In this document: positions 3,415 to 55,554 of the stretch, piece by piece
Position numbering within the stretch: position 1 is the stretch's first letter
Layout: each line of letters opens with the position of its first letter
NCBI RefSeq assembly: GCF_000189555.1
Contig: NC_017276.1
Strand: one strand, 5' to 3'
DNA: 64,000 nt
Origin: Saccharolobus islandicus REY15A
GTDB taxonomy: Archaea; Thermoproteota; Thermoprotei_A; Sulfolobales; Sulfolobaceae
Made by a program: the position numbers and the translations under genes
The notes under the pieces: model-generated
Told to the model about the DNA's origin: nothing
The model's input: only the letters and a program-made list of their open reading frames with translations
Databases searched by the model: none

Positions 3415-4439
3415 TCTTCTGGGAAGTAACTAAAGCCTGCCCATTAACTTGTAAACACTGTAGAGCTAACGCTATAGATAAGCCGTTGCCAGGTGAGCTT
3501 AATACTGAGGAGAGTAGAAAATTATTAGAAGATATAGCGAGATTTGGAAAGGTTGTTATAGTTTTCACCGGTGGTGATCCGTTAAGTAGAAGTGATATTT
3601 TCGAACTAATGGAATACGCTAAGTCGCTAGGATTAGTAGTTTCAATAGCACCCTCTCCTTCTCACCGTTTAGACGATGAGACCATGAAGATGATAAGCAA
3701 TTATACTAGATACATGTCAATTAGCCTAGACGGAGCTACTTCGCAAACTCATGACTGGTTAAGGGGACTTGGTAGTTATAAATACGCTTTAAGAGGAATA
3801 GAGCTTGGATTAAAATACGGGATACAAGTTCAAGTCAATACCCTAGTTTGGAAGAAGAGTTATAGTGAATTACCTTTCGTAGTCAAATTGCTAAAAGAGA
3901 TGGGGGTAAAGATTTGGGAAGTGTTCTTTCTAATTCCAGTGGGTAGAGGAACTACTGAGATGGATATTCCTAGAGATAAATATAAAGATGTTATTGACTT
4001 TCTAGTTGAAGCCACTAGATATGATTTAATTGTGAGAACTGTTGAGGCACCTTTCTTTAGGAGAGCTAAACTTGAGTATACTCCAGCTACTGGTAATAAT
4101 AATGAGCTGGTTTCTAAATTACGCGAACTGTTAGGTGAACCAGTAAAGGAAGTTGATAAGAGCATTTTGCCTACTAGGGACGGGGCTGGCGTTATCTTTA
4201 TAGGTTATAATGGTGATGTCTATCCTAGTGGCTTCTTACCATTGTATTTAGGTAATGTTAAGAAGGAGAGTCTAGTCGATATTTATAGAAAGTCTGAGGT
4301 TTTGAAAAAATTAAAGGATAGTAGGTTCGAAGGGAAATGTGGCATATGCAAATACAATAATATTTGTGGGGGGAGTAGGGCTAGGGCTTTTGCAGTATAT
4401 AATAACCCATTTGCAGAAGACCCAATGTGTCCATACTAA
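3387..4439 (+). CDS. Radical SAM/SPASM protein, NirJ/AhbD-like
   Basis: CPLTCKHC motif, [22 protein letters not shown]...DPMC. Overlaps the preceding gene. Confidence 0.75.
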
Positions 4440-4561
4440 TACGCTTTTATTTTAAACTAAAGATGAATGTGCTTATAAAAATGTTATAAGTATTATAGGT
4501 TTAAAAATTGGATTATTAAGTATTTCATGATAACTTAAAAACTTCTAATACAAATACATAC

Positions 4562-5974
4562 TTGATGAGTCAAGAGGTTATTGAAGTTCGTTCGCCCTCC
4601 AATCTTAATGTAATTGGAACTGTGAAAAGAATGCATAAAGATGAGGTTAGAGGAGAAATAGAGGAGGCATATAAGGGATTTGAAATAATATCAAAGATGC
4701 CCCTCTATAAAAGGACAGCTATATTGAGAAAAGTATCGGAAATTTTGGAAAGAGAACAAGAGAGACTAGCTAAACTACTTGTAATGGAAGCCGGTAAGCC
4801 GATTAGGGATTCTAGGGTTGAAGTATTAAGGGCTTCCAGATTGTTTAGACAAGCTGCTGAAGAAGTCGGAATGGTTTTAGAAGGTAAAAATTATAGAGTG
4901 GACGCTTATGAGTATCCTCCTGGAAATGAGAATAGAATAGTTGTAAGTACTAGGGAACCGATAGGTGTTGTATCTGCAATTTTACCCTTCAACTTCCCCA
5001 TAAACTCCTTTGCCCATAAGGTTGCTCCAGCTTTAGCAGTAGGAAATTCAGTAGTGGTTAAGCCAAGTATAAATACACCCCTAGCTGCCATAGAAATGAA
5101 GAAAATATTGGTTGAGGCTGGATTACCCGATAGTGCAGTTAGAGTAGTCACTGGTTATAGTAGTGAAATCGGGGATGAGATAATTACTCACCCATTGGTC
5201 GGCTTAATTACGTTAACCGGTTCCACACAAACGGGTCTTAAAATAGCCTCTAAGGCTGTTTCCTTAGGGAAGAGAATAATAATGGAGTTGGGAGGTTCTG
5301 ATCCCATAATAATCTTAGAAGATGCCAATATAGAGAGAGCCTCTTCAATAGCTGTTAGAGCTAGGTTTGAGTACGCTGGACAGAACTGTAATGCTGGCAA
5401 GAGAATTATAGTTAGGGAGGAGATATACGATAAGTTCGTAAAGGCGTTTAACGATAAGGCTAGAGCGTTAAAGGTAGGTGACCCCTTGGATGAAACTACC
5501 GACGTTGGACCAGTAATCAACAAAGAGAGCGTTGAGAACTTAAACAGTGTATTAGCAGACGCTAAAGCTAAGGGTGGAAAGGTTGAAATCCTCAATAAGG
5601 GTCCAGAGAGTGGAAGTTTCTTCCCACTGACTATGGTAACTAATCCCTCACTGGATATGCTAGTCCTAAAGAGTGAAGTCTTCGGACCTATAGTACCAAT
5701 TGTGAGTGTTAAGAGTGATGAGGAGGCGATACGAATAGCTAATTCAACCGAGTATGGGTTACAGTCTGCAATCTTTACTAATGATGTAAATAGGGCTTTA
5801 AAGTTAAGTAGAGAGTTGAAGTTTGGTGCTGTTATCATAAATGATAGTACGAGATTGAGGTGGGACTCACTAGCATTCGGCGGATTTAAGAAAAGCGGTA
5901 TAGGGAGAGAAGGAGTTAGAGAGACAATGCTTGAAATGACTGAAAATAAGTTGATAGCAATAACGCTTCTTTAA
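4562..5974 (+). CDS. NAD(P)-dependent aldehyde dehydrogenase
   Basis: ALDH motifs PFNFP, TGST, MELGGSDP, GQNC (catalytic Cys), EVFGP, FGGFKKSGIGREG. Confidence 0.95.
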   Translation: MMSQEVIEVRSPSNLNVIGTVKRMHKDEVRGEIEEAYKGFEIISKMPLYKRTAILRKVSEILEREQERLAKLLVMEAGKPIRDSRVEVLRASRLFRQAAEEVGMVLEGKNYRVDAYEYPPGNENRIVVSTREPIGVVSAILPFNFPINSFAHKVAPALAVGNSVVVKPSINTPLAAIEMKKILVEAGLPDSAVRVVTGYSSEIGDEIITHPLVGLITLTGSTQTGLKIASKAVSLGKRIIMELGGSDPIIILEDANIERASSIAVRARFEYAGQNCNAGKRIIVREEIYDKFVKAFNDKARALKVGDPLDETTDVGPVINKESVENLNSVLADAKAKGGKVEILNKGPESGSFFPLTMVTNPSLDMLVLKSEVFGPIVPIVSVKSDEEAIRIANSTEYGLQSAIFTNDVNRALKLSRELKFGAVIINDSTRLRWDSLAFGGFKKSGIGREGVRETMLEMTENKLIAITLL

Positions 5975-10409: not shown

Positions 10410-10840
10410 AATTATTGTTCACACTCTTGTTGGTGATATTAAACGCTTTTCAAGGCCGAGTCCTTTGTAGCTTATTGTGGATTAGACCCTGTTGTGGAAA
10501 GAAGCGGTAGGGCTGTGATAAGTAAGGGAATTCCCAAGAGGAGTAATAGATACTTGCGTAGCTTGTTTTATTTTCTTGCAGAGATAAATTACCATAGGCC
10601 CCAACCTTGCTGAAGTTCTACGAGTCCCACAAGGTTAAGCTTCACAGTAGGAAATTGCACACTGCTTTGGCTAGAAAGTTGGCTAGGATTATATGGAGTG
10701 TTTGGTATAATAATAAGCCTTATGAGCCTAAATAGGTGAATCCCTTCCCCTTAATCGCCACGTGGGTTGAAAGGATCTACGTGGCAACCTTAATTGACAC
10801 TATACTTGAAGTTCAACCGAAATATTTATTACTGAACGCC
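10410..10840 (+). mobile_element. IS110-family remnant (3' transposase portion plus right noncoding end)
   Basis: Translates to GDIKRF..AESFVAYCGLDPVVERSGRAVISKG with frameshifts. Stop at 10733-10735, then a structured noncoding end. Confidence 0.85.
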
Positions 10841-15160: not shown

Positions 15161-15510
15161 TATAAGGTTGTTAATACTGGTATATAAAGATAACAGGCTG
15201 AACTTGTACGCCACTGACCTTAACTTGAGCGATGAGGAGATAGATGCAACTTGGAAGATTAGGTGGGAGATAGAGAAGTTACACAGGGACGTCAAGACCT
15301 TGGGTATGCAAGATTCCTCTTTCCTCAAGAGGAAGAGGCTTCAAGGTTATCTGCTCCTCTTTGTGATGGTGGTCAACGCGGCCAGAGACTTGGTCACGTC
15401 CCTTAACTTGAAGAGCGTGGAGGAACTTCTCCGGTTCGTTGAAATACGTTTAGAGGGTGCTCTGGGTTTGATGAAAATCTTTAAGCTGCGTTAAAGTAGA
15501 ACAACTGCTA
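15161..15510 (+). mobile_element. 3' fragment of the ISC1200-like element
   Basis: Near-identical to 911-1260 (few substitutions), including the right TIR at 15493-15510. The 5' part is missing. Confidence 0.9.
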
Positions 15511-20599: not shown

Positions 20600-21197
20600 G
20601 TAGGAGAGCTCTACCAACTTAAATACACCCCCTTGGTAATTGAAGAGATCAAAGTTCTAGCTAAAATACTGCTCGAAACGCAAGAGAGGTTAGGAAGATG
20701 ATTAAGGGGCAAGTACCAGATGACCACGTCTTATTAACAATTCCGGGTGTTGGGAGGCTTGCAGCTGGTATTATTATAGGTATTGTTGATGATATTAAGT
20801 GCTTTTCAAGGCCGAGTCCTTTGTAGCTTATTGTGGATTAGACCCTGTTGTGGAAAGAAGCGGTAGGGCTGTGATAAGTAAGGGAATTCCCAAGAGGAGT
20901 AATAGATACTTGCGTAACTTGTTTTATTTTCTTGCAGAGATAAATTACCATAGGCCCCAACCTTGCTGAAGTTCTACGAGTCCCACAAGGTTAAGCTTCA
21001 CAGTAGGAAATTGCACACTGCTTTGGCTAGAAAGTTGGCTAGGATTGTTTGGAGTGTTTGGTATAATAATAAGCCTTATGAGCCAAAGTGATTGAAGTTC
21101 CCTCCCCCGAATCGCCACGTGGGTTGAAAGGATCTACGTGGCAACCTTAGTTGACACTATGCTTGAAGTTTGACCGAAAGGTTTGTTACTGAACGCC
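20600..21197 (+). mobile_element. IS110-family remnant, second copy
   Basis: LLTIPGVGRLAAGII...FVAYCGLDPVVERSG with frameshifts. Stop at 21089-21091. The right end is homologous to 10736-10840. Confidence 0.85.
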
Positions 21198-21206
21198 CCC
21201 GTTAAG

Positions 21207-21566
21207 TTAAAAAGATAGTCCGATCTCTTTTGCTAAGTCCTTTAGCCTCTTAGCTTCTTTTTTCATTTGTTTAACGAAAAGAGATGCAGAGTCATTCCAT
21301 TCCTCGGGAGTAAAAGCAAAGAATTCTACGCGTGCTCTCAGGTACTTTCCGAGTTTTTCAAGTCTATCAATATACCTTAAGCCTTCAAAGTCTCGCGATA
21401 TTATGACTAAATCTATGTCACTTGTCTCTAAGTAATCTCCTCTGGCCCTAGAACCCACTACGTATATATCTTCAATTCTAATTTCATTACTTATATCATT
21501 AATAAATTCTATTGCGACTTTTACCAATTCAACTTGACTTTTTAATGCAGATTTCGCTTTACCCAT
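21207..21566 (-). CDS. Minimal nucleotidyltransferase (MNT pair 2)
   Basis: VVGSRARGDYLETSDIDLV motif. Confidence 0.9.
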   Translation of the reverse strand: MGKAKSALKSQVELVKVAIEFINDISNEIRIEDIYVVGSRARGDYLETSDIDLVIISRDFEGLRYIDRLEKLGKYLRARVEFFAFTPEEWNDSASLFVKQMKKEAKRLKDLAKEIGLSF

Positions 21567-21931
21567 TCTATCACCTTTTCCGCTTTTTTTACTAACTCCT
21601 CAGCATCTTCCTTACTATACAACGAATATGGTACAGTATTTGCAGCATCAGGATATCTAGAGATAGTATAGTGCAAAGTAAGTTTGATTACTTCACTTCT
21701 TATCTCCTCTACGGATAATCCTATCTCTTCCTTTATTATCTCTAACAACTCATTTAAGTCATGAGTCCTCTCGATCTTTCCTCCCGCTATTAAGAGTGCT
21801 TTTAGAGCTTTCTCAGCAGCTTGTTCGGCCCAAAAGGCTGAAGCATAATAGTGACCAGTTGTAATAGTATCTTTAGCAGTTGCTAAATCTTCTAAGGCTT
21901 GTCTGAACCATTTTTCTGCTTCTTCTCTCAT
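21542..21931 (-). CDS. HEPN domain protein (pair 2)
   Basis: AFWAEQAAEKALKA, THDL and YTISRYPD motifs. Confidence 0.92.
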   Translation of the reverse strand: MREEAEKWFRQALEDLATAKDTITTGHYYASAFWAEQAAEKALKALLIAGGKIERTHDLNELLEIIKEEIGLSVEEIRSEVIKLTLHYTISRYPDAANTVPYSLYSKEDAEELVKKAEKVIEWVKRNLH

Positions 21932-22297: not shown

Positions 22298-22969
22298 TCA
22301 CAGAGATACATGAACACTCTCGCACATCTTAATAGCATTTTCAGCATCAAATTTTGAGTATAATTCTTCTGGTGTAGCTCCAGTTTCCTCATCTTCATAC
22401 ATCGCTGATTCTCTTTCACTCTTTAAAACTCTGGAATAGTATGCAAATTCATCTATTTTCTCTTGGAACCATTGTGGGAACCTAACTTTTTCTTTCCTAA
22501 GGAAATATCCAACGTCAACATCACTGTCCTTTCTATTATCTCCTCGAGCTACACTTCCGTAGACCACCACAGAAATCAGCCTATCCCCAAATTCTTCTAA
22601 CAGTAATTTAACTTAATTAGGGGTTAAGGGGGCGAAAGTCCCCTTCCGTAAGGTAGGGGATGAATAGCCCCCTTATAGAAACCTTTTTATTGCAAAAAAT
22701 AGATAATTCTTAGGCCTCGGCTGTAAGAGCTGGGCCGTACCCTTGGGACTGGGGGAACTTACGCCTGTGGAGAGCAACCCTCCGTAACCCCTCTTCCACA
22801 CGGGGCATTACAGAACGGTTCCGTTCGATGGAACCTCCGCTGTGGGTGAAGGGGGATCGAGGTTGCTCTGAGAAGCAGGAAATCCCCATCGTGAGGTGGA
22901 GATGCCCTGTCCGTAAGGGCGGGGTAGTTCACTGAGCTTTTCCAATAAACTCTTATAAGGCTCTTTCAC
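22298..22969 (-). pseudogene. Broken MNT-HEPN pair: MNT interrupted by SMN1 and fused by deletion to a HEPN tail
   Basis: Removing 22612-22932 restores MKEPYKSLLEKLIKLLLEEFGDRLISVVVYGSVARGDNRKDSDVDV. Downstream it reads a HEPN tail (ERESAMYEDEETGATPEELYSKFDAENA). Confidence 0.85.
22612..22932 (+). mobile_element. SMN1-type non-autonomous IS200/IS605-family element (321 bp)
   Basis: Exactly 321 bp, inserted 3' of TTTAA with no target duplication. Subterminal hairpins; right end GTAGTTCAC. A second copy lies at 54019-55554. Confidence 0.9.
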
Positions 22970-23240
22970 GGGTTGAGTATTTGTTAATAATAATAAAAAC
23001 CTTATCTTATTTGGTGAGGAAAACTTGAAGTTATCACTGTTGGACTCATGTGTGGTAATACGGCTTTCTCACTTTAATTTTTCTAATTTGTTGAATTCTT
23101 ATTATTTCCTACAAATTTAATATTAGATAGTTAGAAGTATTTTTATAAAAATATTTTGGGGCCTACCGTCATAAAAAGGAGCTTTCGCCCTCTTACCCAT
23201 TAAAACTCTATGGTTTCAAAAAGGCGGATATATTTTTCTT

Positions 23241-40144: not shown

Positions 40145-40741
40145 ATGGGAAAAGAAAAGAAAATTTTGGCATTTGACTTGTACGGTACAATTTTGGATCT
40201 ATCAGGGATTTCACAAGAAATGAGAAGGAAACAACTAGAGTATACTTGGCTATTAACCATAATGGGAAGATATGTGGATTTCGATGAGATAACCAAAATG
40301 GCAATAAGCTACATCCTAGGAGAGGATAAAATAGAGGAAGAATTGAATAAGTGGAGAAATCTAAGGGCACATCAAGATGCAATCTATTTAAAGGACATCT
40401 CCACAATATCTGATATTTACATTTTATCCAATGGTACGACTAAGGCTATAGAGGAACTTTTAAAACTTAATGGTTTGTCTAGCTATTTTAAAGGAATATT
40501 TAGCGCAGAAAGGGTAAAGGAATATAAACCCTCACCTAAGGTCTACAAATACTTCCTTGAGGCAGTTAATGGAGAGGCTTATCTGGTCTCATCAAATCCA
40601 TTTGATGTTATTGGTGCTAAGAATGGTGGAATGAAGAGCATATACGTTAATAGGAGAAATATGCCAGTTGACCCATTAGGTTATGAACCGGATATTGTGG
40701 TAAGGGATTTTAAGGAGTTATATGAATGGTTACAAAGGTGA
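40145..40741 (+). CDS. HAD-family hydrolase, haloacid dehalogenase type II-like
   Basis: FDLYGT, LSNG, YKP and SSNPFDVIGA motifs. Confidence 0.92.
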   Translation: MGKEKKILAFDLYGTILDLSGISQEMRRKQLEYTWLLTIMGRYVDFDEITKMAISYILGEDKIEEELNKWRNLRAHQDAIYLKDISTISDIYILSNGTTKAIEELLKLNGLSSYFKGIFSAERVKEYKPSPKVYKYFLEAVNGEAYLVSSNPFDVIGAKNGGMKSIYVNRRNMPVDPLGYEPDIVVRDFKELYEWLQR

Positions 40742-40752
40742 ACTACCACGCC

Positions 40753-41957
40753 CTAACGGACGTGGCTTCCTGCTTCACAGCCGAGGCTTGCCAAAGGTAG
40801 AGGTCTCAGCTCCACAGGCACTAAGGGTCGTTCCGACCCCGATCTACTCAGAATATTAAGAGAAGCATTATAATCACGATCTACAGTCCAACCGCAGGAA
40901 GGACAGACAAACACACGATCAGCCAAAGTCAAGTCCTTCTTAACGTAACCGCACCTAGCACAAATCATTGAAGTAAAAGCAGGATTAACAAAACGAATCT
41001 CCTTACCATACTTCCCAACTTGATACTCCATGATACTCCTAAACTCATGAAAAGCAACATCATGTAACCTCATCCTCAGCCTTCTGAGAGACTTACCAAC
41101 AATTTGCTTAACATGAATATCCTCCATTACGAGAACATCATAATGCTCAGCAAAATACTTCCCCAGTTTCATGTACATATCCATCCTCAGGTTCTTCAAG
41201 TACTCATAAGCCCTTGCAAGCTTAATCTTCGCCTTAAACCAGTTGTGTGACAAGAACTTCTTCCTTGAAAGAGCTTTATGAAGCCTCTTCATCTTGTTGA
41301 GTGCCTTCTCGTAAGGCCTCATGTTTGGCACGTATTCCCCGTCAGAGGTAGTGAGAAGTTTCTCTACACCAACGTCCACAGCAACAACTTTGTTTGTCTT
41401 GGGGAGTTGAGGATACTCTTGATCCACAACGAAAGTGATGTACAATCTGCCTGAAGGTGCCAGCTTGACTACTACCCTCTCCACTTTTTCCAGTTGGAAA
41501 TCCCTATGAACAACGACGTTGAAGATACCTAGGTTTGAAAGCTGAAGCGTCATTACCTTCTTCTTGTTCTTCTTGCTTTTCGTCCTTATTTCTCTCACCT
41601 TCATGACTTTCCAACCTGACTGAGGGTATACTAGTGAGTACCACTTGTGTGCTTTCTTTTCCTTGGGGAAGTGTGCTAACCCTTCGAAGAACCTCTGTCT
41701 AGCGTCGTAGAATCTGTCTGCGATCTGTTGTAGTGTTTGGGAATTAGATGTTGATATTGTTTATCCTGTTTTCTTAGATCGAGAGCTAGTTGTCTCAACT
41801 CCGTCTTAGTGAGTCCTTTTCCGTCTCTCTCATGAAAATAGATGTCTGCCCAACGTAGGGTGTTGTACACTTCACACGCTAACCTCAATTGGGCTTTTAA
41901 CGCCCTCAATGTTTGTTCGTCAGCGTAAGCTCTAAAGCGTAACCCTACGTCAGACAT
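40753..41957 (-). pseudogene. tnpB: Frameshifted TnpB RNA-guided nuclease
   Basis: N-terminal HTH ORF at 41676-41957 and RuvC/Zn-ribbon ORF at 40753-41604 (VAVDVG, VMEDI, CARCG, CPSCG, DRDYNA). Frameshift near 41750. Confidence 0.92.
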
Positions 41958-42018
41958 TAATAGAATATTTGAAAAAGAATTATTTAAATATAAGGGGGCT
42001 ATCCATCCCCTCCCTCAC

Positions 42019-43239
42019 CGGTAGACCCAAAATCATATTAGAAAAAATATTTCTGGTAGGATAATATCGAATTGATAAAAGATAAAGAAATTTATAAGAG
42101 TATAAAGAATTCAATTGAAGAAAGGGTTTAAGGTGAGGGAGATGGCGTATTACCACGTGACATAGGAAGATGGTAACACCAGGTCTCCCTCACCAAAATA
42201 ACATTCAACAAATAGGATATAAATTACTTTCCATGTTGAACTTCCAAGGGGAAAAGGTAGAGGAGGTAGCGAAAACTCTCATCTCCGCGTGTTTGTGGAA
42301 CGATTCAGTAGAGAACAAGTCCAGAGCGTATGACGTATCCCCACAGACCGTGAGGAATTACGTAGAGAAACAAGGGATGGAAGTGACTGAAAAGCTATTG
42401 GAAAGAGCTAGGAAAATATCCTTGGAGATATTAAAGGGAGTGAATGAGATAGATCTTTCAATAGACTGGACAACCAAGACATGGTACGGGAAACCAGTGA
42501 AAGGGCTCGGGAGCTCTGAAAAAGGAAACTCGTGGAACTACGCAACTGCAACAACCAAGTATAAGGGGAAAGTGCTTTTACTTGCCTTTATTCCGCAAGT
42601 GAACGGTATGACTAAGGACGAGATAGTGAAGGCTCTTGTTGAACAAGTAATGGCAATGGGATTCAAGATAAGGTTGATAACTCTTGACGCTGGTTTCTAT
42701 ACTGTTGACGTGCTCAACTTCATTTCACAGTTTAAGTACATAATTGCTGTTCCGGTTGGGGACGTGAAGGTGTACGAGGAGTTTGACGGGGATTACACAA
42801 CTAATAGTAAGAGGCATAGGAGGGATGAGCAGGTCAAGTTCAGGCTTCTCGTGTACAGCAAGGAAAAAGTGGGGAGAAAGAAGAAGAGCCTTGTTTACTT
42901 CGCTAGGGCTACTAACCTAGACCTATCCAAGAGGGAAGTGTTGGATTTGTACAATAAGGTAAGAGGTCCCATAGAGACCTCTTATAGGAACATTAAGGCT
43001 TTTCTTCCATTTACTAGTTCTACTAAGTTTGTTTTCCGCACGTTGATCTTCGTGCTGGCCCTTGTACTCTACTCCTTATATACCATATTCAAGGGGGAGG
43101 TGGGGAGAGAGGAGTTTAGATTATTATTAATTCTTTTATTTCCTGATTTATTCAATCCAGAGAATTTTACATTTAATGTAATTGAAACGCTTATTTATAC
43201 TATAGATTTATTTTTAAGGAGGTGATTTTGGGTCTACCG
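42019..43239 (+). mobile_element. ISH3-family IS, ISC1225-like (1221 bp), intact transposase 42170-43225
   Basis: TIRs CGGTAGACCCAAAATC and GATTTTGGGTCTACCG, 4-bp duplication TCAC. Transposase has SIDWT, TLDAGFY and RGPIETSYR motifs. Confidence 0.92.
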
Positions 43240-43281
43240 TCACGGAAGGGGTCTTTCACCCCCTTTGAACCCCTTGTTAAG

Positions 43282-48764: not shown

Positions 48765-48817
48765 TGCTCAGCCGAAGGGCTATCGTCACAGATCGGCTGA
48801 AACACGGCTCATCACGC
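48765..48817 (-). ncRNA. Box C/D methylation-guide sRNA
   Basis: The minus strand reads GTGATGA-gccgtgtttcag-CCGA-tc-TGTGACGA-tagcccttcgg-CTGA: boxes C, D', C' and D with 11-12 nt guides, about 52 nt in total. Confidence 0.8.
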
Positions 48818-50041
48818 TACACTTAGTCTAACATCCTTGACCAAAGCATATGGGTAAATCCCTTGCATTGGGGCGTCCCACCATCTCACAGAGTACCTTT
48901 CTCTAGATAACTGTACTATATTCTTTAAAATCTTCTTCAAATTATCAGCTATCCTTACTCTGCCCACTACTCCAACAGGATTACCGTTCCTATAAACTAC
49001 AGTGGCATCTCTAGCAACTGTTGAGAAATCGCCCTCAGCATAGTTTTGGAATCTGGTATACCATACATTGTTTATGAAAACTACATTACCGGAAAGCAGT
49101 GATTCAAATCTAGTATCACCCTCCTTAACCTCTAAATTCCACGCTGTTGGGTATATCCATCCCGCATTACCGGTACTAGGCAATTTGAAGACGGTGGATA
49201 GTTCGTTATTTAGTAAAGGAGTTGTAAATACTCCATTTTCAATTATAGCCTTGTTATAGGTAAACGTACCTTCATCATCAAATCCCCACGAGTTAGGTCT
49301 ATCCTCCTTAGGAGTGTCTAATAAGGTAAACTTATCTGATCCCGCCTTTTCTCCAGGCTTCAACATCGACATCCCAGACATTATAGCGTAGCCGGAAGCC
49401 ATCCTTGCAACACTCTCCATTAAATTACCCATTACTAAAGGAGAGAGAATCACGTCATATTTACCTTCGGAAATCTCGTATTTGCCAGTAATTGATGCCA
49501 ACTCATTAGCTTTCTTTATACTATCCTTAACTTGAGATGGGGAGAAATTAGTAGAAGAAAAAGCCCATTGTCCGCTATGTTCCCTATTCTTAGCCCTAAA
49601 GTAACCGCTTATGCTTTGATTGTTTTCCGTTCCGTTGAATCCCTTAGATGTAACCAAGGATCTTTCCATATCATCTATTGATATTATACCGTAAAGGGGA
49701 TATTCCGACTCTATGAGAGATAAAAGAGGTGATAAATCGTCAAATAGTGATATAATGTTAGTGTTATTCCTAACCATTTTGTATTCTCTCTCATTTTTAC
49801 TCATAATAGGAAAGAAGTCTACTGGGGTTAGTTTAGGTTTCTCATTTAAATTACTTATCCTACCCAAGAACCCTTGGCTATCCTTCTTTAACGCTAGGAA
49901 ATAGTAACTGTTAGTCATTCTCTGTATTGTAGCTACCTTACTCTCAACTAGCTTAATGATTATCCTCCTTGTCTTCACTCTCAATAGTCCTACTTCTTCT
50001 CCCTTTACTTCTTGCACGTATTTTACCATTTCCTCATTCAT
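48812..50041 (-). CDS. tldE: TldE/PmbA-family protein
   Basis: FDDEG motif, no HExxH, overlaps tldD. Confidence 0.88.
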   Translation of the reverse strand: MNEEMVKYVQEVKGEEVGLLRVKTRRIIIKLVESKVATIQRMTNSYYFLALKKDSQGFLGRISNLNEKPKLTPVDFFPIMSKNEREYKMVRNNTNIISLFDDLSPLLSLIESEYPLYGIISIDDMERSLVTSKGFNGTENNQSISGYFRAKNREHSGQWAFSSTNFSPSQVKDSIKKANELASITGKYEISEGKYDVILSPLVMGNLMESVARMASGYAIMSGMSMLKPGEKAGSDKFTLLDTPKEDRPNSWGFDDEGTFTYNKAIIENGVFTTPLLNNELSTVFKLPSTGNAGWIYPTAWNLEVKEGDTRFESLLSGNVVFINNVWYTRFQNYAEGDFSTVARDATVVYRNGNPVGVVGRVRIADNLKKILKNIVQLSRERYSVRWWDAPMQGIYPYALVKDVRLSVA

Positions 50042-54018: not shown

Positions 54019-55554
54019 GTGAACTACCCCGCCCTTACCCGGTAGACCCAAAATCACCTCCTTAAAAATAAATCTATAGTATAAATAAGCGTTTCAATTA
54101 CATTAAATGTAAAATTCTCTGGATTGAATAAATCAGGAAATAAAAGAATTAATAATAATCTAAACTCCTCTCTCCCCACCTCCCCCTTGAATATGGTATA
54201 TAAGGAGTAGAGTACAAGGGCCAGCACGAAGATCAACGTGCGGAAAACAAACTTAGTAGAACTAGTAAATGGAAGAAAAGCCTTAATGTTCCTATAAGAG
54301 GTCTCTATGGGACCTCTTACCTTATTGTACAAATCCAACACTTCCCTCTTGGATAGGTCTAGGTTAGTAGCCCTAGCGAAGTAAACAAGACTCTTCTTCT
54401 TTCTCCCCACTTTTTCCTTGCTGTACACGAGAAGCCTGAACTTGACCTGCTCATCCCTCCTATGCCTCTTACTATTAGTTGTGTAATCCCCGTCAAACTC
54501 CTCGTACACCTTCACGTCCCCAACCGGAACAGCAATTATGTACTTAAACTGTGAAATGAAGTTGAGCACGTCAACAGTATAGAAACCAGCGTCAAGAGTT
54601 ATCAACCTTATCTTGAATCCCATTACTTGTTCAACAAGAGCCTTCACTATCTCGTCCTTAGTCATACCGTTCACTTGCGGAATAAAGGCAAGTAAAAGCA
54701 CTTTCCCCTTATACTTGGTTGTTGCAGTTGCGTAGTTCCACGAGTTTCCTTTTTCAGAGCTCCCGAGCCCTTTCACTGGTTTCCCATACCACGTCTTGGT
54801 TGTCCAGTCTATTGAGAGATCTATCTCATTCACTCCCTTTAATATCTCCAAGGATATTTTCCTAGCTCTTTCCAATAGCTTTTCAGTCACTTCCATCCCT
54901 TGTTTCTCTACGTAATTCCTCACGGTCTGTGGGGATACGTCATACGCTCTGGACTTGTTCTCTACTGAATCGTTCCACAAACACGCGGAGATGAGAGTTT
55001 TCGCTACCTCCTCTACCTTTTCCCCTTGGAAGTTTAGCATGGAAAGTAATTTATATCCTATTTGTTGAATTTTGGTGAGGGAGACTTGGTGTTACCATCT
55101 TCCTATGTCACGTGGTAATACTCCATCTCCCTCACCTTAAACCCTTTCTTCAATTGAATTCTTTATACTCTTATAAATTTCTTTATCTTTTATAAATTCG
55201 ATATTATCCTACCAGAAATATTTTTTCTAATATGATTTTGGGTCTACCGTTACGGACAGGGCATCTCCACCTCACGATGGGGATTTCCTGCTTCTCAGAG
55301 CAACCTCGATCCCCCTTCACCCACAGCGGAGGTTCCATCGAACGGAACCGTTCTGTAATGCCCCGTGTGGAAGAGGGGTTACGGAGGGTTGCTCTCCACA
55401 GGCGTAAGTTCCCCCAGTCCCAAGGGTACGGCCCAGCTCTTACAGCCGAGGCCTAAGAATTATCTATTTTTTGCAATAAAAAGGTTTCTATAAGGGGGCT
55501 ATTCATCCCCTACCTTACGGAAGGGGACTTTCGCCCCCTTAACCCCTAATTAAG
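54019..55554 (-). mobile_element. Second SMN1-type element, split by an ISC1225-type IS in its right-end hairpin
   Basis: 54019-54038 plus 55254-55554 are the reverse complement of 22612-22932. It follows TTTAA on the minus strand. Confidence 0.9.
54040..55249 (-). mobile_element. ISC1225-like IS, second copy (1210 bp), with lesions
   Basis: Same TIRs as the copy at 42019. TTAC duplication with one extra C on the left. A 5-bp deletion near the transposase start and a 6-bp in-frame deletion relative to that copy. Confidence 0.92.

Follow-up and report, generated by a model that had tools for sequence, protein, structure and literature searches.

SMN1, a protein-less IS200/IS605 element of Saccharolobus islandicus, carries a very probable omega-RNA-derived module and may guide TnpB in trans

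The stretch analysed here, called the window throughout, comprises 64,000 nucleotides of Saccharolobus islandicus REY15A (contig NC_017276.1) and holds two copies of SMN1, a short element without protein genes, the first of which splits a gene for an MNT-type nucleotidyltransferase. In this study, we followed up an earlier note, made from the letters alone, which had read SMN1 as a promoter plus a complete TnpB omega-RNA scaffold and each copy as a possible stand-alone guide RNA. Our analysis confirms the observation and partly supports the interpretation. Based on sequence and structure comparisons, SMN1 very probably carries a genuine omega-RNA-derived module behind its own inherited promoter; that it also works through the full trans-guide mechanism set out below is, in our estimate, an even proposition or slightly better. 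The features of copy 1 are as follows (window positions; loci from our collections are cited by L numbers, proteins by P numbers).

22298–22969, minus strand: MNT-type nucleotidyltransferase gene split by SMN1, an open reading frame (ORF) once the flanks are joined
22607–22611, plus strand: TTTAA, insertion-site motif and transposon-adjacent motif (TAM), directly 5' of the left end in the sequence
22612–22932, plus strand: SMN1 copy 1, intact, 321 bp
22628–22659, plus strand: left-end hairpins GGGGGC-GAAA-GTCCCC and, overlapping it, CCCCTTCC-GTAA-GGTAGGGG, the presumed TnpA recognition structure
22684–22691, plus strand: TATA box TTTTTATT, homologous to the parent tnpA promoter
22712–22715, plus strand: predicted transcription start, about 26–27 nt past the TATA centre and at the position of the tnpA start codon in the parent
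22713–22736, plus strand: S0, 5' hairpin GGCC-CGGCU-GUAAG-AGCUG-GGCC, with no counterpart in ISC1733-type omega-RNAs
22740–22755, plus strand: S1, hairpin with conserved loop GGGAC, matching S1 of covariance model R1
22763–22772, plus strand: P1 5' strand (CCUGU) and GGAG of a kink-turn-like motif, from models and alignment (block 1 of the earlier note)
22772–22868, plus strand: P2, long variable hairpin with base GAGCAACC/GGUUGCUC, its apical ~50–60 nt dispensable
22869–22881, plus strand: UGAGAA, P1 3' strand (GCAGG) and AA, from models and alignment (block 2)
22882–22903, plus strand: H3, hairpin AUCCCCAUC-GUGA-GGUGGAGAU, common only to Sulfolobales ISC1733-type omega-RNAs
22904–22925, plus strand: H4, terminal right-end hairpin GCCCUGUCC-GUAA-GGGCGGGGU, TnpA substrate and last omega-RNA helix
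22926–22932, plus strand: AGUUCAC tail (with H4, block 3); the published guide begins directly after UUCAC (PMC11043419)
22933–22952, plus strand: candidate guide TGAGCTTTTCCAATAAACTC, flanking DNA that carries, on the opposite strand, the 5' end of the interrupted MNT gene

Copy 1 ends in GTAGTTCAC / GGTAGTTCAC and is followed by the flank TGAGCTTTTCC. On the minus strand, 22933–22969 holds the first 12 full codons of the MNT gene plus the first base of codon 13, and 22298–22611 the remainder; an ORF of 90 amino acids adjoins the element as a remnant. Joined without SMN1, the flanks give an uninterrupted MNT ORF of 116 amino acids (Pfam NTP_transf_2, E 9.4e-10), and an intact, identical 116-amino-acid protein (P0208) is annotated in S. 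islandicus HVE10/4 and CP046616. The empty site in CP046616 (L172) reads ...AGTAATTTAA / TGAGCTTTTCCAATAAACTC..., with TTTAA and TGAGC contiguous, flanks identical at 199 of 200 positions and no duplication, so compared with it the insertion of copy 1 is scarless. The idea that the flank joined to TTTAA recreates the empty MNT allele is thus borne out by an exact match in another strain, and the TTTAA noted ahead of both copies is indeed there, at 22607–22611 and 5' of copy 2. Among the roughly 16 distinct SMN1-family insertions, TTTAA precedes at least 13, GTTAA one and CTTAA one; a further copy, apparently truncated at its 5' end, has no TTTAA-like motif, and the 3' flanks are unlike one another in all copies. 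The gene that SMN1 split is a chimera, its first ~45 residues matching MNT proteins (P0139) and its C-terminal ~70 residues giving a 92% match to HEPN proteins (P0122), and an intact HEPN/MNT pair lies just downstream of it, at 21207–21931.

SMN1 therefore shows insertion 3' of a short motif without target-site duplication, a precise empty site, subterminal hairpins on either side without terminal inverted repeats, homology of its ends to those of a tnpA-bearing element, and no transposase gene, its ORFs all being of 59 amino acids or fewer with frames that are not conserved. These properties are those of a non-autonomous IS200/IS605 element, a palindrome-associated transposable element (PATE), usually called a miniature inverted-repeat transposable element (MITE), and the 3' part of SMN1 appears to be an omega-RNA (also right-end RNA, reRNA) gene. 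According to a passage in PMC3718332 that cites Berkner and Lipps 2007, ISC1733 mobilises SMN1 in trans; REY15A has eight ISC1733 copies and seven SMN1 copies.

For the origin of the two ends, we used full elements with both tnpA and tnpB from virus SMV3 (L127), S. islandicus LAL14/1 (L130), strain L.D.8.5 (L129) and M. yellowstonensis (L103), and ISC1733-type loci gathered from a phage collection and by protein look-ups. The elements of L127, L130 and L103 carry Y1_Tnp and OrfB genes, and the residues mutated in SisTnpB1 correspond to D187, E271 and D335 in the TnpB of the full elements. The left end of SMN1 is 86–98% identical to those of tnpA+tnpB elements, in which it runs ...CCCCCTTATAGAAACCTTTT(T)ATAGTTATYAAAAAATAGATATAACT-ATG(tnpA), and SMN1 can be aligned to about ATAGATAA. 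The TATA-like TTTTTATT at 22684–22691, picked out before, is present and aligns with the tnpA promoter box of L127, L129 and L130, where the aligned TTTT(T)ATAG stands 22–23 nt 5' of the tnpA ATG; the centre of this parental TATA box is about 27 nt from the start codon, the usual spacing of leaderless Sulfolobus mRNAs. Because TTTTTATT corresponds to the tnpA TATA box and the parent spacing can be applied to it, transcription of SMN1 is predicted to start at about 22712–22715, and an A/T-rich box is retained at the TATA position in nearly all family members. At the other end, the final 62 nt are about 92% identical to right ends beside TnpB genes of 405–412 codons (Metallosphaera, Thermocladium, others), and remnants of the C-terminal TnpB codons can still be discerned (GLGELTPVE vs GLPLEPVD). 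Together, these comparisons indicate that SMN1 joins a left end with its tnpA promoter to the final ~220 nt of an IS200/IS605 element with tnpB.

Two covariance models were used to ask whether this 3' part is an omega-RNA scaffold. The first, R1, was trained on a diverse set of 20 right ends, each preceded by sequence that can be recognised as coding for a TnpB C-terminus, with SMN1 and ISC1733-type sequences excluded. These right ends share one order of parts, namely S1 (loop GGAAC), a linker, P1 (CCUGU/GCAGG), a GGAG/UGAA motif, a variable P2, H4 and the tail UAGUUCAC; 97.1% of their alignment cells are paired, compared with 40–50% when the registers are slid, and 15 pairs have changed on both sides. 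When the whole 64-kb window was scanned with filters off, R1 recovered SMN1 copy 1 with 40.7 bits (E 1.6e-9) and copy 2 with 40.0 bits, E being about 2e-9 for both. The right end of a solo tnpB element in the window scored 113 bits, but is a training member; otherwise, R1 matched only the left-end hairpin in each SMN1 copy, at 12 bits, and the next unrelated hit reached 7.8 bits. The core of SMN1 without H4 (22737–22886) still gave 23.5 bits, with S1, the linker, P1, GGAG, the base of P2 and UGAGAA-GCAGG aligned correctly. ISC1733-type right ends, which were outside the training, scored 64–66 bits, and in 22 non-training sequences 91.5% of helix positions are paired, in an alignment fitted to the model. 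The second model, R2, was trained on six ISC1733-type right ends and includes H3, which is present only there and in SMN1; it gave 73.9 bits for SMN1 (E 5.9e-19, model positions 12–159 of 160). The covariance-model comparison that the earlier note had proposed as a check thus came out in its favour with both models, and SMN1 matches, in structure as well as sequence, the omega-RNAs that lie beside tnpB genes.

Among the individual parts, CCUGU (22764–22768) of SMN1 pairs with GCAGG (22875–22879) to form P1, with GGAG/UGAA flanking it; this helix shows covariation in the 20 tnpB-linked right ends and agrees with the RAGATH-18 consensus of Rfam. Variants L018, L148, L151 and L156 have lost apical parts of P2 and kept its base, and in 24 family sequences 22 of the 26 columns at 22859–22884 are invariant. 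The S0 helix has three pairs in which both sides changed among 20 family variants, and its inner portion is similar to GCUCUAAGAGCU at the 3' end of tnpB in L005. The long internal stem reported earlier, GAGAGCAACC...GGTTGCTCT, is present and is kept in the 20 family variants. The conserved UAGUUCAC ends exactly at 22932, which makes the scaffold abut the element boundary, and the TAM TTTAA is at the same time the target motif. We also observed that the S1 loop (GGAAC/GGGAC, 22743–22747) is complementary to GUUC (22927–22930) in the tail UAGUUCAC beside the guide. The two could form a pseudoknot, with the proviso that these bases are invariant in all sets and so give no covariation signal. RNAalifold proposed, for the SMN1 family, a different long-range pairing, GAGCU/AGUUC; both pairings are invariant, and S1 loop GGRAC with GUUC seems the more general. 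We set aside the single-sequence minimum-free-energy fold, which pairs S1 with H3 and conflicts with the family and with the tnpB-linked RNAs. A UUCUUC/GAAGAA pairing that RNAalifold derived from six near-identical ISC1733-type sequences was overruled by P1 covariation in the diverse set, and an alignment of ISC1733-type and other right ends (A2) was discarded because H3 was misplaced in it.

Known families in Rfam gave a weaker signal. At the gathering threshold, no Rfam model matched SMN1 in the window; with larger inputs, the filters removed even right ends linked to tnpB. At lax thresholds, the best weak match was RAGATH-18 (RF03064), the scaffold core of IS607 TnpB reRNAs (PMC11061315), at 23.7 bits (E 0.038 in a 441-nt search), below its gathering score of 44.9. 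Its consensus, CCUGUGGAG...hairpin...UGAAGCAGGAA, aligns at 22764–22881 over the full model length; the hairpin has 86 nt in SMN1 and 39 nt in the model, and SMN1 belongs to IS200/IS605, not IS607. The sot0042 and HgcC models reached 11.2 bits each, far below threshold; the sense-overlapping transcripts (sotRNAs) and HgcC RNAs of archaeal IS1341-type elements are likewise structured RNAs of the tnpB 3' part and right end, but they overlap an intact tnpB, which SMN1 does not. As a side observation, a 22-nt right-end motif, CCGTNAGGGCGNGGTAGTTCAC, occurs, among the matches listed, at more than 120 loci (L007–L126) in tnpB elements from many phyla of archaea and some of bacteria, and there it often encodes the last TnpB codons (...QEAPSVRAG*, the stop lying inside GGTAGTTCAC).

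The SMN1 family extends well beyond REY15A. Copy 1 is 100% identical to a copy on pHVE14 (L170, 1501–1821) and 99.4% identical to one on pARN4 (L171, 886–1206), both S. islandicus plasmids of conjugative type, and such plasmid-borne copies are a likely route of spread between strains. A copy with 93% identity lies in Acidianus tailed spindle virus (ATSV), and variants of about 90% and about 79% identity were found on metagenome contigs, viral as well as hot-spring, and in one genome bin of Marsarchaeota; in the 33 metagenome loci, no tnpB was found adjoining the SMN1-like copies. The family was collected with a conserved 21-mer, which fixes 21 columns of the S1-P1 segment. In its 20 distinct variants, the helices are 95.5% paired compared with 42–53% when slid, and nine pairs changed on both sides where 2.5 would be expected. 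Mean pairwise identity is 94.7% in the segment with the 3' strands of P2 and P1 and 94.6% in S1-linker-P1, and falls to 75% in the left end, 66% in the promoter and spacer and 75% in H3.

Other TnpB-less elements were seen in the same collections. A second family of 250–270 bp, on Marsarchaeota and Nitrososphaeria contigs of metagenome-assembled genomes (L050, L058, L064, L084, L088, L114), resembles SMN1 in its left end, possesses a promoter-like A/T box and complete S1, P1, P2 and H4, scores 66–78 bits with R1 and occurs in many copies per bin. Minimal PATEs of about 60 bp consist of a left-end and a right-end hairpin (L030, ~4158–4217; L086, ~174–234), and one of about 130 bp consists of left end, H3 and H4 (L098, ~507–636); these are without the omega-RNA core. 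Because 60-bp PATEs with just two end hairpins exist, the internal 190 nt of SMN1 are probably dispensable for mobility.

What is published on the TnpB proteins of S. islandicus allows a closer comparison. Its IS605-type TnpB has the TAM TTTAA (PMC10640517, PMC11043419), and an ISC1733-type TnpB cuts TTTAA-flanked targets, which is lethal without a repair template (PMC11043419). TnpB7 requires 113 nt derived from the coding sequence plus the 38/39-nt right end, shorter RNAs failing (Feng et al., PMC11043419), and it accepts a guide RNA expressed on another replicon, the guide starting after UUCAC (PMC11043419). In LAL14/1 (L130), the tnpB stop codon lies 37 nt ahead of the right-end boundary; counting the TnpB7 length back on this element therefore places the start of the minimal reRNA at GCGGGGTCGGGACTGCCC, which is S1. 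SMN1 has the homologous region from S1 to the end (22740–22932), though with a different S1 stem, linker and P2. With the ISC1733 reRNAs of SisTnpB1 and TnpB7, it shares the genome, the TAM TTTAA, the tail UAGUUCAC, P1 with its kink-turn-like motif and the S1 loop GGGAC, and H3 and H4 are about 90% identical; unlike them, it has no overlapping tnpB ORF.

Protein-less elements with omega-RNAs are not new. PATEs were first defined in Haloquadratum (PMC3119063), and omega-RNA-bearing PATEs have been noted in Geobacillus stearothermophilus (Meers et al. 2023, PMC10055086), with the remark that PATEs often encode omega-RNAs, for which a TnpB of other elements would be needed in trans (Meers et al. 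2023, PMC10055086). SMN1 resembles these in being protein-less, in its parental ends, in its scarless insertion next to the TAM and in a right-end-proximal omega-RNA that would need a TnpB encoded elsewhere. It differs from the bacterial PATEs in being archaeal and hyperthermophilic, in having retained the tnpA promoter, which may plausibly serve as a dedicated one, in a scaffold that has diverged from that of the resident autonomous element, and in belonging to a family whose members are found on a virus and on conjugative plasmids as well. The guide-library concept is thus already published (Meers et al. 2023), and SMN1 adds an archaeal case. Our literature search brought up no paper that connects SMN1 or another Sulfolobus MITE with TnpB guides, and no experimental demonstration of the trans-guide PATE principle.

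Based on this, the trans-guide mechanism would run as follows. RNA polymerase would start at about 22713 from the former tnpA promoter and transcribe across the right end into the flank. REY15A has eight ISC1733-type TnpB proteins, and one of them would bind the resulting RNA in trans. The complex would recognise TTTAA followed by TGAGCTTTTCC..., a sequence present only where SMN1 is absent, that is, at the donor joint after TnpA excision or in an empty allele on incoming DNA. It would cut this empty site, and either repair from the sister chromosome would restore SMN1 or the cell would die; in both cases, the copy would be retained.

Several points weigh against this reading. About 27 bits of any R1 score are due to the near-identical terminal hairpin of every right end, as the 60-bp minimal element L086, which has the end hairpins only, shows with its 27.5 bits. 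R2 does not align S1 properly, and the invariance of the core is partly forced by the 21-mer used in collecting. SMN1 also departs from the resident ISC1733 reRNAs at places where specificity might reside: its S1 stem is inverted (CCCU/GGGG instead of GGGU/GCCC, with G-C turned to C-G at three pairs), its linker reads GAACUUAC and is 3 nt longer than the UUAGA of ISC1733, S0 is an extra 5' hairpin, P2 has 97 nt instead of about 56 nt, and the conserved internal loop CCUCUR...YAAG is replaced by CCUCCGUAA...GAUCGAGG; the S0-S1-linker and core are closer to other tnpB lineages (L149, L005) than to ISC1733. What had been called a complete omega-RNA scaffold is therefore one in architecture, with S1 and all downstream helices, and departs from ISC1733 in S1 stem, linker and P2. 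In the same way, the proposal that SMN1 lost both proteins and kept the guide cassette holds for its anatomy of left end, promoter and 3' ~220 nt, but these differences mean that it is not a plain deletion derivative of present ISC1733. Finally, TnpB7 was less active with a guide RNA from a separate replicon (Feng et al., PMC11043419), and a TTTT run at guide positions 6–9 could end transcription early in Sulfolobus.

The alternatives differ in which of these observations they explain. SMN1 could be an inert relic, an internal-deletion derivative whose omega-RNA-like region is unused and unexpressed and whose conservation merely reflects recent spread. The S. islandicus copies, at 99–100% identity, would fit this, as would the inflation of core conservation by the collecting 21-mer and the readiness with which IS605-type deletion derivatives arise (PMC3119063). 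However, the family reaches down to about 79% identity and yet keeps 94.7% over the 3' strands of P1 and P2, a segment that played no part in collecting the sequences, while left end and promoter have drifted to 66–75%, and compensatory changes maintain pairing in S0, P2, H3 and H4. The second, unrelated TnpB-less family from Marsarchaeota also retains the full fold. Nor did the 33 metagenome loci contain a tnpB-linked parent with the SMN1-type P2, from which it follows that the lineage has evolved separately for long. We consider an inert relic unlikely, though still worth keeping in mind. A need at the level of DNA, in which the hairpins would serve single-stranded DNA during TnpA excision and integration rather than an RNA, can account for the ends of the element. 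Recognition of subterminal palindromes by Y1 TnpA is established for IS608 and ISDra2, and the left-end hairpins and H4 are palindromes of this type; the second left-end hairpin (22640–22659) resembles H4, to the extent of the 12-bit partial match with R1, and G-T pairs are tolerated in DNA hairpins. It does not extend to the interior: the known TnpA substrates are subterminal hairpins only, the 60-bp and 130-bp PATEs (L030, L086, L098) have just these, and S1, P1 and P2 lie 50–190 nt inside and correspond to helices for which tnpB-linked omega-RNAs of different phyla show covariation. We regard this explanation as improbable.

That the SMN1 RNA is made and used, but for something other than guiding, is quite improbable in our judgement. 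It might soak up TnpB as a decoy and modulate ISC1733, as its similar but not identical scaffold could suggest, or regulate neighbours by read-through, since transcripts leading out of copy 1 would run antisense to the split MNT gene over its promoter and 5' end; but the scaffold ends exactly at the boundary with the conserved guide-positioning tail UAGUUCAC, which fits guiding better than mere binding. A small protein, the product of the 57-amino-acid minus-strand ORF at 22759–22932, is the explanation to which we give next to no weight. The ORF is present and is annotated in KU645528 as ATSV_D57 (L169, 1641–1814), wholly inside the viral SMN1 copy, but in 24 family sequences the frame varies from 13 to 109 amino acids and is shifted by indels of 1, 6 and 7 nt, and substitutions keep base pairs instead of codons. 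We rejected it on the lack of conservation of the frame in relatives, and the ATSV_D57 annotation is probably spurious.

If the trans-guide reading is right, its consequences go beyond one element. We suggest tentatively, and with appreciably less confidence than for the mechanism itself, that the SMN1 lineage could consist of long-lived 'guide-only' selfish elements that have lost both proteins and live as parasites on other parasites, borrowing TnpA for movement and TnpB to punish their own loss, with an omega-RNA driven by their own promoter, held by purifying selection and partly remodelled (S0 gained, S1 flipped, P2 enlarged), and that the 321-bp element could also act as a portable addiction or homing module on ATSV, pHVE14 and pARN4; virus and plasmid copies could then cut SMN1-free versions of themselves or the host locus. 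Should SMN1 RNAs prove to be loaded into TnpB, SMN1 would become the first tested protein-less transposon that shields itself with a borrowed RNA-guided nuclease. Such a result would explain the ~200 nt of seemingly 'useless' interior in some MITE-like elements, and the known set of TnpB-surveyed sites in REY15A would grow by seven natural guides. The natural scaffold variants (flipped S1, trimmed or enlarged P2) would show which changes are tolerated, of use for thermostable TnpB editors. A negative outcome would leave SMN1 as an ordinary deletion derivative. REY15A is well suited to decide this, as the SMN1 transposition rate is measurable, TnpB7 and SisTnpB1 are characterised, and genetic tools and natural empty alleles are available.

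The second SMN1 copy occupies 55554 to 54019 of the minus strand and has been interrupted by an insertion sequence (IS) of the DDE type.

55250–55554, minus strand: 5' part of SMN1 copy 2, after TTTAA in the sequence, from the left end to the first half of H4
54039–55249, minus strand: DDE IS of ~1.2 kb inside the H4 loop; the same IS is found in the sequence at 42019–43239
54019–54038, minus strand: final 20 nt of SMN1 copy 2, GTAAGGGCGGGGTAGTTCAC, identified in the sequence

The suggestion that each copy may be a stand-alone guide RNA therefore fails for copy 2, which could not guide because the IS divides the scaffold from the flank.

Part of the earlier argument rested on the tnpB element of the window, which is of a different kind.

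40738–43281, minus strand: IS1341-type solo tnpB element with TAM TTTAT, from the sequence; its left end is interrupted by the DDE IS at 42019–43239

Three blocks had been said to be common to SMN1 and the 3' end of this element, and all lie where they had been placed. The terminal one, TCCGTWAGGGCGKGGTAGTTCAC, is exact at 22910–22932 (plus strand) and 40738–40760 (minus strand) and has three mismatches at 54019–54041 (minus strand); these three occurrences of the 23-mer compare with 0.00 expected from 100 shuffles. The two shared 10-mers exist as described but are at chance level on their own (blastn E ~8.5), and gain meaning only within the P1 structure. SMN1 and the solo element have in common just the left end (83–90%) and the last 32 nt (84%). 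Its tnpB gene (40753–41957, minus strand) is frameshifted and divided into ORFs of 93 and 283 amino acids. In REY15A, solo IS1341-type tnpB genes use TTTAT, and IS605-type (ISC1733, tnpA+tnpB) ones use TTTAA (PMC10640517, PMC11043419); no reRNA was seen for a solo IS1341-type tnpB in this strain (PMC11043419), which counts further against a partnership. On its type, TAM, frameshift and lack of H3, and with about 37% identity between the TnpB groups, we rejected the window tnpB as partner of SMN1. It is not of the cognate type, but a broken cousin, neither parent nor partner.

The DDE IS has an ORF of 351 amino acids at 42170–43225 and is ISC1234-like by size and family. We found it three times in the GTNA tetraloop of IS200/IS605 end hairpins (CCGT-N-AGG): in the left end of the solo tnpB element (42019–43239, duplication GTGA), in the right-end hairpin of SMN1 copy 2 (54039–55249, GTAA) and in the right-end hairpin of an ISC1733-type element of strain L.D.8.5 (L129, ~3728–4920, GTTA). 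A degenerate IS end also stands beside a degenerate left-end hairpin at 23133–23200. The IS looks as if it prefers such hairpins as target, much like the SMR-A repeats that insert in PATE palindromes of Haloquadratum, and insertion there would inactivate mobility and guide RNA alike. Further long direct repeats in the window, 911–1210 with 15161–15460 and 10427–10840 with 20783–21197, are 98–99% identical over 300 nt and are probably other IS copies in a variable region of the genome. The window also contains the C/D box small RNA sR9 (Rfam RF01312) at 48766–48819 on the minus strand, with 43.1 bits, above threshold.

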